This document shows, in pieces, positions 1,516 to 7,500 of a DNA stretch of 64,000 nt. The translations under genes and the position numbers were made by a program. Each line of letters starts with the position of its first letter. Position 1 is the stretch's first letter. The DNA is taken from the NCBI GenBank assembly GCA_965637545.1, contig OZ281500.1:10354001-10418000 (forward strand), read 5' to 3'. The stretch is from Phallusia mammillata (Eukaryota). The notes beneath the pieces are model-generated. The model worked only from the letters and a program-made list of their open reading frames with translations, did not search any database and was not told the DNA's origin.

Positions 1516-4500
1516 TTAAGAAAGCAGACTCTTGATTTCATCTTCCAGGTCGTCGTCTGAGCGTTTTGATTCTTGCGACTGAGATTGTACATGCTCACCG
1601 ACCATTTGTGCAAGTTGTTCGTCACTTTCTGCTAAAGTTTGTATTTGATGCAGCTGTTGCTGTTCCTGAAAAAGAAAAATACAGTCAGAATTGTTAATTT
1701 TGTTTGATTAAAAACTTTTTTATTTGCAAATTTGTTAAAGATCTATGAAATTCAAAAAGTGGTGCAATTAGATTACAATTTGAAGTTGACATACTTGATG
1801 CAACATTTGGTTGTGGTTATCTTCAAGGATGTTTAGGTCGTTGAGAGTTTTGTGCATCAAGCTTTCCAATTCACCTTGGCTATGCGCTTCACTCTGAATC
1901 ATTTCATTAATCGCGTCCTAAAAAATCGTATTTGTTTACCCGCAGTTCGTATTAGGCCTATGTACACAGCAAGAAAGTTTTTAGTTACAATATTGTTCAA
2001 ATCAGTGAGTATTTTACATTTTTTTACCTGGATGCCCGAGTTCAGTTCCTTGCTCTCACTAACGTCCTCCGCTTTTGCTTTGCTGAGTTCATCAATAGCA
2101 GTACGGGTCTTTTCTTGCAACTCTGCAGGCACTCCAGTCTCCCTGGATGACGACTGTAAGTTGCTAATCACTTGTCTAAGTTGACTTTGAACTTCTTGCT
2201 GCGCCTTTTGTTGGAGTTCAGATTGCTAAAATAAGATTATCACACATGTGAAAAACATAATTACGTATTATCTTTCAAACATAGAGATCAGTATATTAAA
2301 ACTTATTCTAATGATTGCTTGCTTAAGAAAGACTCATACCATTTCTGCTTCTTTATTAAGGCCATCAATTTCGCCTTGTATTTGCTGTTGAATTTGTTTC
2401 TGATGCTCAACGCTTCCAGTGTTCCAGCCTCCAGCGTTAATCTCGTCCATGAGGGTCTTGATATCTCCGTCCAACACATCTTGCATTTGGTTGGCGTCGT
2501 TAAGCATCTCTAAAGCACCATCGGTTTGTATTTGGTGTTGGGACTGGCTCTGATGGGATTGACTTTGTGTCTGCTGTTGGGATTGGCTTTGTGACTGTGA
2601 AGATCCGGTTTGAGATTGAGATTGGTGTTGACTTTGACTTTGGGATTGACCATTGCCCGTAGAAGATCCTGTACCAGTACCGGTACCCGTATTTTCTTCA
2701 CCGTTAACAAGGCCGTCAATTATATCTTGAACTTGATCTTGAATTGAAGCAATCTCTCCCTGACTTTGGCTTTGTGATTGAGATTGAGATCCGCCACCGG
2801 CATTTGGGCAGCACATTACACGGATTTCATAATCCTCACATATCGGGTGTACAGTTTGGTCATCACCCAAGCACGCCAAACCAGAATTCAAGTCGCAAGA
2901 AACCACTTGCCATTGCTGGTAAGAGGCAAAATCGTCAACAGTACCGTCCACTGGCTTGCATTCGATTTCGACAGGCGCTTGACAAATTTCATTGCCAGTT
3001 GAGATAATGTGCGCGTATGTTTCGTTGTCATCACGTTGAGGCAACTTTGGACGGTCGGAGTTAATCCAATCAGTCCAGTAACACGCTTCGGTTGTAGTTG
3101 TCGCAACAGTAGTAGTGGTAACAGGAGTTGTCGTTGTCGCAACAGTGGTGGTGGTGGCAGGAGTTGTCGTTGTGGCTAACGTGGTAGTAGTAGCAGGTGT
3201 TGTTGTCGGAGGTGGAGTTGGTTTTGTCACCTTCTGGGTTGTAGTGGTTGGTGCGTTGGGTACAGTGACGGCAATAGTTGTGGTCTCACCAGAACCAGAT
3301 TCCTCTGTGGTGGTTTCGACTGGTGGAGTTGGTTTCGTCACCTTCTGGGTTGTGGTGGTTGGTGCGTTGGGGACAGTGACGGCAATAGTTGTGGTCTCAC
3401 CAGAACCAGATTCCTCTGTGGTGGTTTCGACTGGTGGAGTTGGTTTCGTCACCTTCTGGGTTGTGGTGGTTGGTGCGTTGGGGACAGTGACGGCAATAGT
3501 TGTGGTCTCACCAGAACCAGATTCCTCTGTAGTGGTTTCAACTGATGGAGTTGGTTTCGTCACCTTCTGGGTTGTAGTGGTTGGTGCGTTTGGTACAGTG
3601 ACGGCAATAGTTGTGGACTCACCAGAACCAGATTCCTCTGTAGTGGTTTCGGCTGGTGGAGTTGGTTTTGTCACCTTCTGGGTTGTAGTGGTTGGTGCGT
3701 TTGGTACAGTGACGGCAATAGTTGTGGTCTCACCAGAACCAGATTCCTCCGTAGTGGTTTCGGCTGGTGGAGTTGGTTTCGTCACCTTCTGGGTTGTAGT
3801 GGTTGGTGCGTTTGGTACAGTGACGGCAATAGTTGTGGTCTCACCAGAACCAGATTCCTCTGTGGTGGTTTCGACTGGTGGAGTTGGTTTCGTCACCTTC
3901 TGGGTTGTGGTGGTTGGTGCGTTGGGAACAGTGACGGAAATAGTTGTGGTTTCACCAGAACCAGATTCCTCTGTGGTGGTTTCGACTGGTGGAGTTGGTT
4001 TCGTCACCTTCTGGGTTGTGGTGGTTGGTGCGTTGGGGACAGTGACGGCAATAGTTGTGGTCTCACCAGAACCAGATTCCTCTGTGGTGGTTTCGACTGG
4101 TGGAGTTGGTTTCGTCACCTTCTGGGTTGTAGTGGTTGGTGCGTTTGGTACAGTGACGGCAATAGTTGTGGTCTCACCAGAACCAGATTCCTCTGTGGTG
4201 GTTTCGACTGGTGGAGTTGGTTTCGTCACCTTCTGGGTTGTGGTGGTTGGTGCGTTGGGGACAGTGACGACAATAGTTGTGGTTTCACCCGAACCAGATT
4301 CCTCTGTAGTGGTTTCAACTGATGGAGTTGGTTTTGTCACCTTCTGGGTTGTGGTGGTTGGTGCGTTGGGGACAGTGACAGCGATAGTTGTGGTCTCACC
4401 CGAACCAGATTCCTCTGTAGTGGTTTCAACTGATGGGGTTGGTTTCGTCACCTTCTGGGTTGTGGTGGTTGGTGCGTTGGGAACAGTGACGGCAATAGTT

Positions 4501-7500
4501 GTGGTCTCACCAGAACCAGATTCCTCTGTAGTGGTTTCAACTGATGGGGTTGGTTTCGTCACCTTCTGGGTTGTGGTGGTTGGTGCGTTGGGAACAGTGA
4601 CGATCACAGTTGTGGTTTCACCAGAGCCAGATTCTTCAGGGGTTGTTTCAACTGGTGGTGTTGGTTTTGTTACTTTCTGTGTTGTGGTGGTTGGTGCGTT
4701 GGGAACAGTGACGATCACAGTTGTGGTTTCACCAGAGCCAGATTCTTCAGGGGTTGTTTCAACTGGTGGTGTTGGTTTTGTCACCTTCTGTGTTGTGGTG
4801 GTTGGTGCGTTGGGAACAGTGACGATCACAGTTGTGGTTTCACCAGAACCAGATTCTTCAGGGGTTGTTTCAACTGGCGGTGTTGGTTTTGTCACTTTCT
4901 GGGTTGTGGTGGTTGGTGCATTGGGAACAGTTACGGCAACAGTTGTGGTCTCACCTGAACCAGATTCTTCAGGAGTTGTTTCGACTGGTAGCGTTGTAGG
5001 CGTCGGTTTAGTAACTGGTTTTGTTGTTGTTACAGGGGCTTGTGGAGGAGTTGTTACAACAGGGGGAATTTCAGTTGGAGAACAAGAGGAGGTACAATCA
5101 CACGATGCAACATCGTTGTAGGAATATGAAACTTGTGTGCCGTTCTTGCATTTCAAAGCAACTACTTTGTTGACGGTAGATGTAGGTTGACAGCATGAAC
5201 ACTGACTCTCTGATCCATATTCGGACCAGTAGAATTGTCCACGACAAAATCCGTCACAATATGACATGACAACTGGTTCTGTCGATGCGCAACCGTCTAT
5301 GACCATATATTCGGCGTTGGTGCTGATTCGTCGTCCACATGTGAAGCATTCCTCGTGTACGCACTTCAAGCAACACCCATCCTCGGTGGGTTCCACTGAG
5401 CCACCTGTTGATTCGCATGCGTCCTGGTCAAATGAGGGGCACGGGTTAGGGTAGCAAGCCTCTTCGAAGAATCCAGAAGTGACGTTCATGTTGTTTGTGC
5501 AACCACAAGTGTTACACTTATCGGGAGCCCAACTGGCTCCAGGCTGTAACACAAAATCGCAATGAACACACGTAGCATTAATTCAAATTCAATTTGCTCA
5601 GGCCAACAAAAAACAAGGCTTATTGCAACAAAGTTACGCACGCCATCCTCGGTATTTCCAAACATTTCAAGTATTCGATAAATTTATATTTTGTACCGGT
5701 TTAGCCATTCCGTCTCCACAACACACGTTGTCTGGCACACAGCGGTATTTGGTGCAGCAATCTTCCTCGTAGGTTTCAAGTACAAAGCATGAGGAGCAGG
5801 TTGGCATGTTCGGTGGCGGGCAAACGTAAGGCTGGTCTATAATTACGAGCGTGCCTTGATCTGGGCCACAGATATAAGCGGAGCAGTTGCTGGTGTAACC
5901 CCACATCTCACCAACCTGGTTAAAAGTAAAATAAAATTGTTGCTGAAAAACCGTAAACAGGCATGTCAACGCAACGAATTTTTTTCACTTGGAAACAAAA
6001 GCAAACTTGTTTTTGCGCCATTAAGTACAGGCTATAAGAATGCAGCAAACATATACCAAGAATAAAAAAAGCATTGTAAATGTGCTGGTTTATAGTGATA
6101 ATACTGGAATAAGCGACTTACGTTTTTGCATTCAAGACTTCCATCGGTGTGTGTAACAGCACAACCGTTTGCCACGCACTGGCCACAACATTGACCAACC
6201 GGTGTCACGTAATCATGACAGGGTGGACATCTGGTGTCGCAGCTTGCCACCGAACAGGATGTTTCCAAGCATGATGTCTTCTCATCCGGCTTTCCGGAGC
6301 AAGAGCAGTGAGTACAAGGGTCGGGATTCCATTCGTCGCCAGACTATAAAAAAACATGTTGTTTCAGATTTTCATTTAGGAGTCTGGAAAAGTCGAACTG
6401 GTATAATTGGTTAATTGACGGTTTTATTCAAACCACTATTTTGACCCGACGTACATTTATCATTTTGTGCATCCGTCTTATTAGTTCCATCTTAGAAAAG
6501 CTAACGTTCCATAAACCCATATTGTTTAAACAAATTATTAGTCACCATAACGATCAGGTTTAGTTAAAAGCATCAGGTGTAGTAATCAATTACGTTACAT
6601 GCCTACATACTGCATTTTTTGTGTGACTCGGTAAAAAATTCTTTAGATCGGGACCTCGACTCCTAGTGTTTTACACCAGAATATTTTTTGTGCTAAAGTT
6701 TAACTAACGGGTAATCTATCTGACTAACGTTATGTAATGTTCCATTGTAGAGACATGTGTTCAGTGACTGGCAAGAAATAATTCTGCATCCCCTCTCATC
6801 AACTTCGACCGATGTAGCTTCACATTGCGAGCACACCACGTCTTCCGGACAAGGTTTGGGTTCTAAATAAAACACATGGTTATATTTCCTAACGACAAAA
6901 ATGTTTGTGTCTAGAAAAAACGAGATTTTGTTAAAGCAGAAATTTCATCCCGTTTTTTTTTTAAAAAATAATCATCCCGACTTTATCATTACAGCAGTGG
7001 ATAATCCTCTTAAAAAATAATATTTGTTATTACATACCACAACTGTACAATGGGCAGCATTCCGTGTGTGTGGTAACAAGGTCATAAAGGTCACCGCATT
7101 CCGGTGCAAGGGGGCATGGGTTTCTTGATTTGTTGCAAACACATTCGTAGGTTGGAATGCACTCTCCCTCGTTCGTCTGGATGGCAACGTATCCTGGTGG
7201 GCACTTGGGGACAGAAACTGCCGGGCAGCTTTCGCTTCCTTGTCCCAGAGGATAGTTGCAAGCTTTGAAAGAAACATTTTTGAAGAGTTTATCACACGGA
7301 TCGGTCGCTATGCAACACAGTCAGATAACATAGTATATTTTAACTCTTCAAACGTGAAGGTAAAATTTCGTATTAAGCAAAAGATTGCGAAAAAGGGGCA
7401 GACTTACTGCAGTCATATTGCGGACAACATGGGTCGGTGGTAAGACGACGAAGAGGAACTTCGCAAACACCACATGACGGAACAGTGGCCTTGAAACCCG

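Follow-up and report, generated by a model that had tools for sequence, protein, structure and literature searches.

A gel-forming mucin gene of the ascidian Phallusia mammillata that continues for about 1,070 residues beyond its cystine knot

The minus strand of a 64,000-nucleotide stretch of the Phallusia mammillata genome (GenBank assembly GCA_965637545.1, contig OZ281500.1, positions 10,354,001 to 10,418,000 of the forward strand; hereafter the window, whose own numbering is used for all coordinates) carries a real, expressed ascidian gel-forming mucin gene, the 3' part of which lies in the first lines of the window. In the protein that it encodes, the cystine knot is not the last domain. 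Past the last knot cysteine the same frame continues, on into spliced exons, for about 1,070 residues, and these comprise a domain in which proline, threonine and serine abound (PTS), a CysD domain, a region rich in glutamine and serine (QS-rich) and three further coding exons, an order that had been predicted from the sequence and that is borne out here. Taken as a whole, we consider it likely that the gene encodes an expressed mucin of the type of Ciona GFM1 (Ci-GFM1) in which the knot precedes PTS, CysD and a helical tail, and that this mucin would form knot dimers and a polymer with paired arms. The gel-forming mucin is of a known kind, and its Ciona counterpart has been published without an extension after the knot. 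The parts of the gene on which the argument turns are the following.

2340 to 5543, minus strand: big exon in which one frame encodes a VWC-like module, the cystine knot, PTS, CysD and a QS-rich helical stretch (open reading frame (ORF), splice sites, joint 2340/2225 in the RNA-like runs X1 and X2)
5082 to 5348 (cysteine span), minus strand: cystine knot (C-terminal cystine knot, CTCK) including the CSCC motif (Pfam PF00007; structures 4NT5 and 9QRV of the CTCK of von Willebrand factor (VWF))
3084 to 5081, minus strand: post-knot PTS (mucin) domain of 666 aa (sequence)
3211 to 4996, minus strand: tandem array of 16.1 copies of 111 bp, or 37 aa (Tandem Repeats Finder, TRF)
2811 to 3083, minus strand: CysD domain (Mucin2_WxxW), CYWTDW...RVMCC (Pfam PF13330; RNA contigs 2846-3112 and 2699-3066)
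2340 to 2810, minus strand: QS-rich low-complexity runs alternating with predicted helices (sequence; AlphaFold2 (AF2); RNA contigs 2351-2909)
2028 to 2225, minus strand: second tail exon, 66 aa, phase 0, rich in glutamine and glutamate (splice sites; RNA joints 2340/2225 and 2028/1917; homologous exon in the metagenome contigs L001 and L002)
1795 to 1917, minus strand: third tail exon, 41 aa, phase 0 (joints in X1, X2 and X16; tblastn match in contig L003)
1516 to 1665, minus strand: last coding exon, 49 aa plus the stop codon TAA (1518-1516), phase 0 (joint 1795/1665 in X16; RNA contigs 1434-1604 and 1451-1664)

All of these lie at or near the positions at which they had been predicted, as judged by ORF, Pfam, TRF and splice-site evidence, and the knot and CysD each occur once in the whole window. 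The stop-free frame to which they belong is 1082 codons long (5582-2337), and within it the big exon takes up 3204 nt, or 1068 codons, from the acceptor TTACAG/CCT at 5543 to the donor ATG/GTATGA at 2340. The 914 codons of this exon that lie 3' of the knot are free of in-frame stops, as against 20 and 27 stops in the other two frames of the repeat array. Given the stop counts in the two other frames, an open frame of more than 1000 codons is far beyond chance. There is likewise no methionine between the knot and CysD, so a CysD product cannot start inside the big exon.

The post-knot PTS domain measures 666 aa from the last knot cysteine to the first CysD cysteine (3083), consists of 36% threonine, 14% proline and 6% serine (56% together), and is free of cysteine, methionine and dibasic sites. 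Its 1.8-kb array, in which 16 repeats had been predicted, was counted by TRF as 16.1 copies (94% matches), and the motif EESGSGE occurs once per unit, exactly 16 times in the PTS domain. The units have a mean pairwise identity of about 91%, and the differences among the 16 copies are distributed unevenly: read in the frame of the knot, 6, 3 and 21 columns vary at codon positions 1, 2 and 3, respectively, and there are 36 extra codon types as against only 10 extra residue types. Since the differences fall mostly in third positions and change few residues, the pattern indicates that the repeats are under purifying selection in the knot's frame. An acidic SGSG fits the consensus for glycosaminoglycan attachment. 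It is present in every unit of the window (3211-4996) and is kept in related units, [31 protein letters not shown], and through these sites the post-knot arms might be mucin/proteoglycan hybrids.

Both cysteine-rich domains were recognised by their Pfam profiles. The knot matches Cys_knot (PF00007) at about 5300-5079 with 24.7 bits, just above the cut-off of 24, and CysD matches Mucin2_WxxW (PF13330) at 3077-2811 with 75.2 bits along the whole profile (positions 1-88 of 88) and contains W-T-D-W. Knots of related sequences (below) score 28-34 bits and their CysD domains 72-80 bits against the same profiles, and the CysD of the window is 68.5% identical to the copy on the minus strand of contig L003. 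The best match of the knot among solved structures is the VWF CTCK crystal 4NT5 (E=7e-9), with 9QRV scoring likewise (E=7e-9). The alignment with 4NT5 covers the cysteines from GC onward, CSCC included, and leaves the first and last knot cysteine just outside; these two were assigned by sequence pattern, the window having C-D-C-T-S-S-C at the end of the knot where we take the VWF counterpart to be C-K-C-S-P-R-K-C. CxGxC, CSCC and the last cysteine of the CTCK pattern are all present. In total 11 knot cysteines are kept, including the counterparts of VWF Cys2771, Cys2773 and Cys2811 in CSCC and at the last position, and these counterparts are conserved in the relatives. The counterpart of Cys2811 (5084-5082) is the last knot cysteine, and a single residue separates it from the PTS domain. 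The 4NT5 construct has 107 residues, of which about five are left after the alignment ends at position 102, whereas about 1,070 residues follow here.

In the VWF CTCK the intrachain pairs are 2724-2774, 2739-2788, 2750-2804 and 2754-2806 (PMC8626975), and the two chains of the dimer are joined by the bonds 2771-2773', 2773-2771' and 2811-2811' (PMC6333368). Because all 11 cysteines are present in the window, including the three inter-chain ones, we infer that the knot still dimerises, and because those three are kept, it is plausible that the dimers have two C-terminal arms that are free. It could be argued instead that the knot does not dimerise, in which case the polymer would be linked through the N-terminus only and the extension would be no more than a C-terminal mucin domain on it. 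The marginal Pfam score would fit this, as would the report of a monomeric CTCK, one of some divergent ones, in a vitellogenin (bioRxiv 10.64898/2026.05.25.727680), but the conservation of CSCC and of the last cysteine in this knot and in its relatives speaks against it, and we regard a non-dimerising knot as quite improbable.

To follow transcription of the 3' end, three RNA-like runs (X1, X2 and X16, from two studies) and the DNA run X5 were mapped over 1000-3330. The three coding exons predicted after the big exon have phase-0 splice sites, and each of the three introns appears as a joint in RNA contigs: 2340/2225 in X1 and X2, 2028/1917 in X1, X2 and X16, and 1795/1665 in X16, all of them GT..AG on the minus strand. 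A single X2 contig joins 2421-2340 to 2225-2027 and 1916-1842. RNA contigs also cover 2351-3112, that is the QS region and CysD, as well as the last PTS unit (3211-3315), and the RNA runs leave the intron bins at zero depth. In the DNA run no joints were seen over 1000-3330, and its depth is even. Because the joints and the coverage agree and the introns are empty, the tail exons are real, and CysD and the QS region belong to a spliced mRNA. Over this interval, the mapped runs show neither alternative joints nor loose ends at the tail exons. RNA contigs continue into the 3' untranslated region (UTR) as far as about 1434.

As to the region between CysD and the last exons, AF2 run on 2340-3083 with no alignment (pLDDT 50) gave low-confidence helices at residues 108-127, 182-216 and 225-247, which we use only as a hint. 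Runs of (QS)n occur at two places on the minus strand of the window, at 27835-27676, close to the predicted N-terminus, where SQSQSQ... immediately precedes the first EGF domain, and at 2800-2560, after CysD.

With the VWC-plus-knot piece as the query, relatives of the protein were sought exhaustively among 1.84 billion representatives with HMMER, and five matches were below 1e-30. P0002 and P0110, on the metagenome contigs L001 and L002, contain VWC, knot, about 35 aa of PTS, CysD, a QS-rich stretch and helices, and are followed by a homologous next exon; P0003 contains the knot, a linker of about 45 aa and CysD. On the minus strand of contig L003, a convergent ORF of 828 aa runs from VWC and knot through about 11 repeats of about 43 aa to CysD and a glutamine-rich helical end. 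Each of these repeats carries [10 protein letters not shown], and the repeats are homologous to the units of the window. In each of the contigs L004 and L005, a single ORF runs from the knot over one or two SGSG/PTS units to CysD. Altogether, the knot, a linker and CysD share a single ORF in at least five related contigs (P0002/P0110, P0003, P0113, L005 minus strand and L003 minus strand). Two UniParc sequences, P0114 and P0001, which judging by their accession ranges are presumably Ciona fragments, are 51-58% identical around the knot and pass from it into PTS of the EETGSGE type before the sequence breaks off. The SGSG-bearing units of the relatives, recognised from the sequence, lie within the following intervals.

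L003, 13526 to 16012, minus strand: SGSG-bearing units
L004, 16385 to 17437, minus strand: SGSG-bearing units
L005, 16224 to 17363, minus strand: SGSG-bearing units

Because the relatives share this order in one ORF and differ in the length of the array, the conserved core is, on these comparisons, the knot, an acidic-SG/PTS linker and CysD, and the long array is a lineage-specific expansion of a homologous unit. Read-through from the knot to CysD is thus supported by the lack of a stop or methionine, by the codon bias of the repeats and by the same ORF order in the relatives.

These data also bear on whether the order arose as an artefact, either from a misjoin within the repeat array or from two adjacent genes taken as one. 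An array of 1.8 kb with about 91% identity between units is hard to assemble, and Logan contigs do collapse it; yet the relatives with short, non-repetitive linkers (35-110 aa) keep knot and CysD in one ORF, the contig depth of the DNA run over the last repeat unit (3184-3330) stands at about 18-21 times the flank depth and fits about 16-21 copies, and a second gene would lack a methionine or signal peptide. An assembly misjoin or a second gene within the exon was rejected on the short-linker relatives, the DNA depth and the absence of methionine, and we give an artefact of this kind almost no credence.

In a tree built from VWC and knot, these related sequences form one clade (100/100) apart from the vertebrate mucins, in which knot-terminal paralogues (P0004, P0005 and P0115) nest within the extended forms. 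A single clade of the extended forms was not rejected by the approximately unbiased (AU) test (p=0.115), and for this reason we make no claim as to gain versus loss of the extension. L003, L004 and L005 each contain two mucin paralogues arranged tail to tail, whose knot exons are separated by 3-6 kb, one at about 10.0-10.5 kb on the plus strand and the other at 13.5-17.5 kb on the minus strand. The convergent paralogue of L004 and L005 has a stop right after the knot and no CysD downstream; in L003, both have the knot and then CysD. The window extends about 1.4 kb past the stop of its gene, and any convergent partner would be off-window.

The order, which might have turned out to be common in known mucins, is rare. 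Among about 102 matches of the exhaustive search that cover the knot, nine extend beyond it by more than 60 residues (four of the DAN family, three predicted mucin-like proteins of frogs and fish, and two ascidian-like sequences), and CysD follows the knot only in the two ascidian-like ones. In the three frog and fish proteins (XP_041416789.1 of Xenopus laevis, XP_068115900.1 of Hyperolius and KAG9331782.1 of Albula), the knot lies short of the extreme C-terminus, as in the window, and 93-201 residues come after it; unlike the extension described here, theirs contain no CysD or other Pfam domain. They are automatic predictions and, with 32-37% identity, no close relatives of this knot. A search for homologous proteins with the knot and first PTS units (4863-5552, minus strand) returned none at E<=1e-5 although relatives exist, and we treat this null as a word-index miss, as the alignment query found six proteins. 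In the ESM Atlas, a query with P0003 gave generic knot clusters with scores of at most 0.82 and none that combined Cys_knot with WxxW, which is a weak null. A full-text search of the literature found no paper describing CysD or PTS after the knot. The original suggestion that the architecture might be undescribed has to be qualified: the gene has the layout of the published Ci-GFM1 (PMC6109156), in whose description the extension goes unmentioned.

The rest of the gene was read from a crude splice-aware model of 54 exons and 3938 aa, which skips the 41-aa exon that the RNA contigs confirm. With this exon added the protein comes to about 3,980 aa, of which 2909 aa reach to the end of the knot, both being crude counts. 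Upstream of 10 kb the model is crude and its start unreliable: no signal peptide was found in it, and the first exon (27972-27964) is untrustworthy. The remaining features are these.

5697 to 10047, minus strand: eleven VWC-type exons (model)
12453 to 12661, minus strand: exon with the sole PTS stretch between D3 and D4, about 47 aa (model)
10182 to 27835, minus strand: remaining gene, with five EGF domains and an FN2 and CBM14 head, followed by D1, D2, D'D3 and D4 (crude model; Pfam fn2, CBM_14, four VWD, C8 and TIL)

Pfam VWD matches at about 21.8, 18.7, 15.8-15.1 and 12.0 kb, with C8 and TIL between them, make up three N-terminal assemblies and D4. The PTS between D3 and D4 is as short as had been predicted (about 47 aa as against the 45 or so expected). 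The C8 exon of D3 matches MUC2 with 93 bits and keeps all cysteines, and these may include the inter-chain residues corresponding to MUC2 Cys1088/Cys1130 and VWF Cys1099/Cys1142. The inter-chain cysteines of D3 are reported to be conserved in Ci-GFM1 (PMC6109156). Between D4 and the knot, the VWC exons and the start of the big exon form two tandem six-exon blocks (10047-7663 and 7588-5082) with 44.7% amino acid identity and exon lengths of 187/225/137/222/225/219 versus 181/225/134/222/219 and the start of the big exon. The first block ends in a vestigial knot start (..[14 protein letters not shown]) before splicing on, and P0001 suggests that both copies of the block exist in its source species, probably Ciona. 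Between the last EGF domain and D1 (24640-23389, minus strand), the model contains several very short acidic exons rich in SGE/EEVEGS, which may be model noise or a second acidic linker of the SG type.

Two observations concern the sequence downstream of the gene. An RNA-like contig of X1 at 1143-1296 (depth 3.4) lies about 220-370 nt past the stop and beyond the AATAAG at 1400-1395, and may mean that the 3' UTR is longer or that an unrelated transcript is present. Farther on, 1000-1054 has a depth of about 1.28 million in the DNA run as against about 286 in the flank, thousands in the RNA-like runs, and many differing loose ends to either side. This short element has the look of a dispersed repeat of high copy number immediately downstream of the gene.

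By its domain layout, compared through the published description, the gene is the counterpart of Ci-GFM1. This protein (LC072665; Nakashima et al., 2018) is the third most abundant protein of the gut envelope membrane of Ciona intestinalis type A (PMC6109156), and was described from RT-PCR and rapid amplification of cDNA ends (RACE) as a protein of 2880 aa with an FN2 and chitin-binding domain (CBD) head, D1-D4, a central PTS of 50 aa, VWC and the knot; no PTS, CysD or tail after the knot is mentioned in the paper (PMC6109156). The Phallusia protein likewise has an EGF/FN2/CBM14 head, D1, D2, D'D3, a central PTS of about 50 aa, D4, VWC and knot, and differs in its 1,070 or so post-knot residues. 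With MUC2, MUC5AC and MUC5B it shares the VWD-C8-TIL assemblies, PTS repeats, CysD, VWC and CTCK. In mucins of the MUC2/MUC5 type, however, D3 and D4 flank the PTS and CysD, and only a short tail comes after the knot (PMC4948705, PMC9169620, PMC10082768), whereas the protein described here has a vestigial central PTS, with its main PTS and sole CysD placed after the knot.

Several points weigh against an extended, knot-dimerising mucin, and are best considered together. The Pfam score of the knot barely exceeds the cut-off. Co-transcription of the knot with the PTS domain is argued from ORF logic and conservation. X1 and X2 contain 0.15 and 0.10 of the words sampled from 5000-6300, and 0.41 and 0.46 of those from 1500-3210; the lower share of the knot region fits 3' bias, but would also fit less knot-containing RNA. 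Lastly, the 2880 aa of Ci-GFM1 are close to the 2909 aa (crude count) from the N-terminus to the knot here, and a knot-terminal transcript may exist in Ciona. One way to accommodate the last two points would be that the gene gives two isoforms, a read-through mRNA and a knot-terminal one, with the extended form being minor or tissue-specific. It would fit the lack of any mention of a post-knot domain for a protein obtained by RT-PCR and RACE, and also the smaller representation of the knot region, compared with the tail, in the RNA-like runs. The smaller share of the knot is equally expected from 3' bias on an mRNA of about 12 kb, though, and the match in length may be a coincidence, given the crude N-terminus of the model. 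Moreover, the 914 codons after the knot are uninterrupted, the tail exons show no alternative joints or loose ends, and the read-through frame is conserved and under selection. We therefore regard two isoforms as unlikely.

Another way to reconcile a knot-terminal mucin with the open frame would be cleavage of the precursor after the knot, which would release a separate small PTS-CysD glycoprotein. There is a precedent for this in MUC2, whose unstructured tail is cut by furin at dibasic sites (PMC10082768). In the post-knot part of the big exon, by contrast, no dibasic or furin-like motif was found, and a furin-type cut after the knot was rejected for want of a supporting motif. The sequence GDPH is the acid-labile Asp-Pro autocleavage motif known from the D4 of MUC2 and MUC5AC and from FCGBP. 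It occurs at residues 737, 1207 and 1696 of the model (about 18.6, 15.5 and 12.0 kb), that is only in D2, D3 and D4, which again offers no site beyond the knot. Cleavage after the knot thus seems to us very improbable.

We return to the reading that we favour, an extended mucin with a dimerising knot, and to how such a protein might work. Its N-termini would be linked through D3, and its knot would dimerise as in VWF. With the last knot cysteine on the dimer axis and one residue before the PTS domain, the two PTS arms would leave the knot side by side, each ending in CysD and a helical, glutamine-rich tail that might dock on other mucin parts or be cross-linked. With D3 linkage and knot dimers together, the polymer would bear paired side arms and would not be a simple linear chain; its shape may be branched or brush-like. 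There are parallels for both kinds of contact. CysD1 of MUC2 filaments, carried on a Thr-rich tether of about 40 aa, docks on the bead next to it (PMC9169620), and a comparable geometry of tether and CysD recurs in the short-linker relatives, there positioned after the knot. MUC2 is also stabilised by isopeptide cross-links (PMC8752817), and by analogy one may speculate that the glutamine-rich segments serve as transglutaminase substrates. A more far-reaching proposal, which we put forward with considerable doubt, is that ascidian mucins of the GFM1 type make up a distinct class of polymer. The knot dimer would be the centre of a four-armed unit, whose two C-terminal arms would be hybrid mucin/proteoglycan brushes with one acidic SGSG glycosaminoglycan-type site per 37-aa unit, each capped by CysD and the glutamine-rich helical tail and cross-linking non-covalently or via transglutaminase, and whose chitin-binding heads would anchor the net to the chitin mesh of the gut.

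In the literature on mucins and VWF consulted here, the chain is taken to end C-terminally with the knot, and models of the polymer, whether of linear chains or of nets, assume tail-to-tail dimers with nothing beyond. A conserved chordate lineage in which the main PTS, the sole CysD and a helical tail are placed after the knot offers a natural test of what happens when these modules are moved, and the mucus polymer of these animals probably differs in shape from that of human mucins. Ci-GFM1, the only tunicate gut mucin studied, was called a mucin on account of a PTS of 50 residues and has been used to argue for a transition from chitin to mucus (PMC6109156). If in its relatives the knot is followed by hundreds of PTS residues, the gut membranes of tunicates may be more mucin-like than this, and possibly proteoglycan-like. 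Should the four-armed class of polymer prove true, the main mucin domain of the gut mucin of the chordate ancestor need not have been located between D3 and D4.

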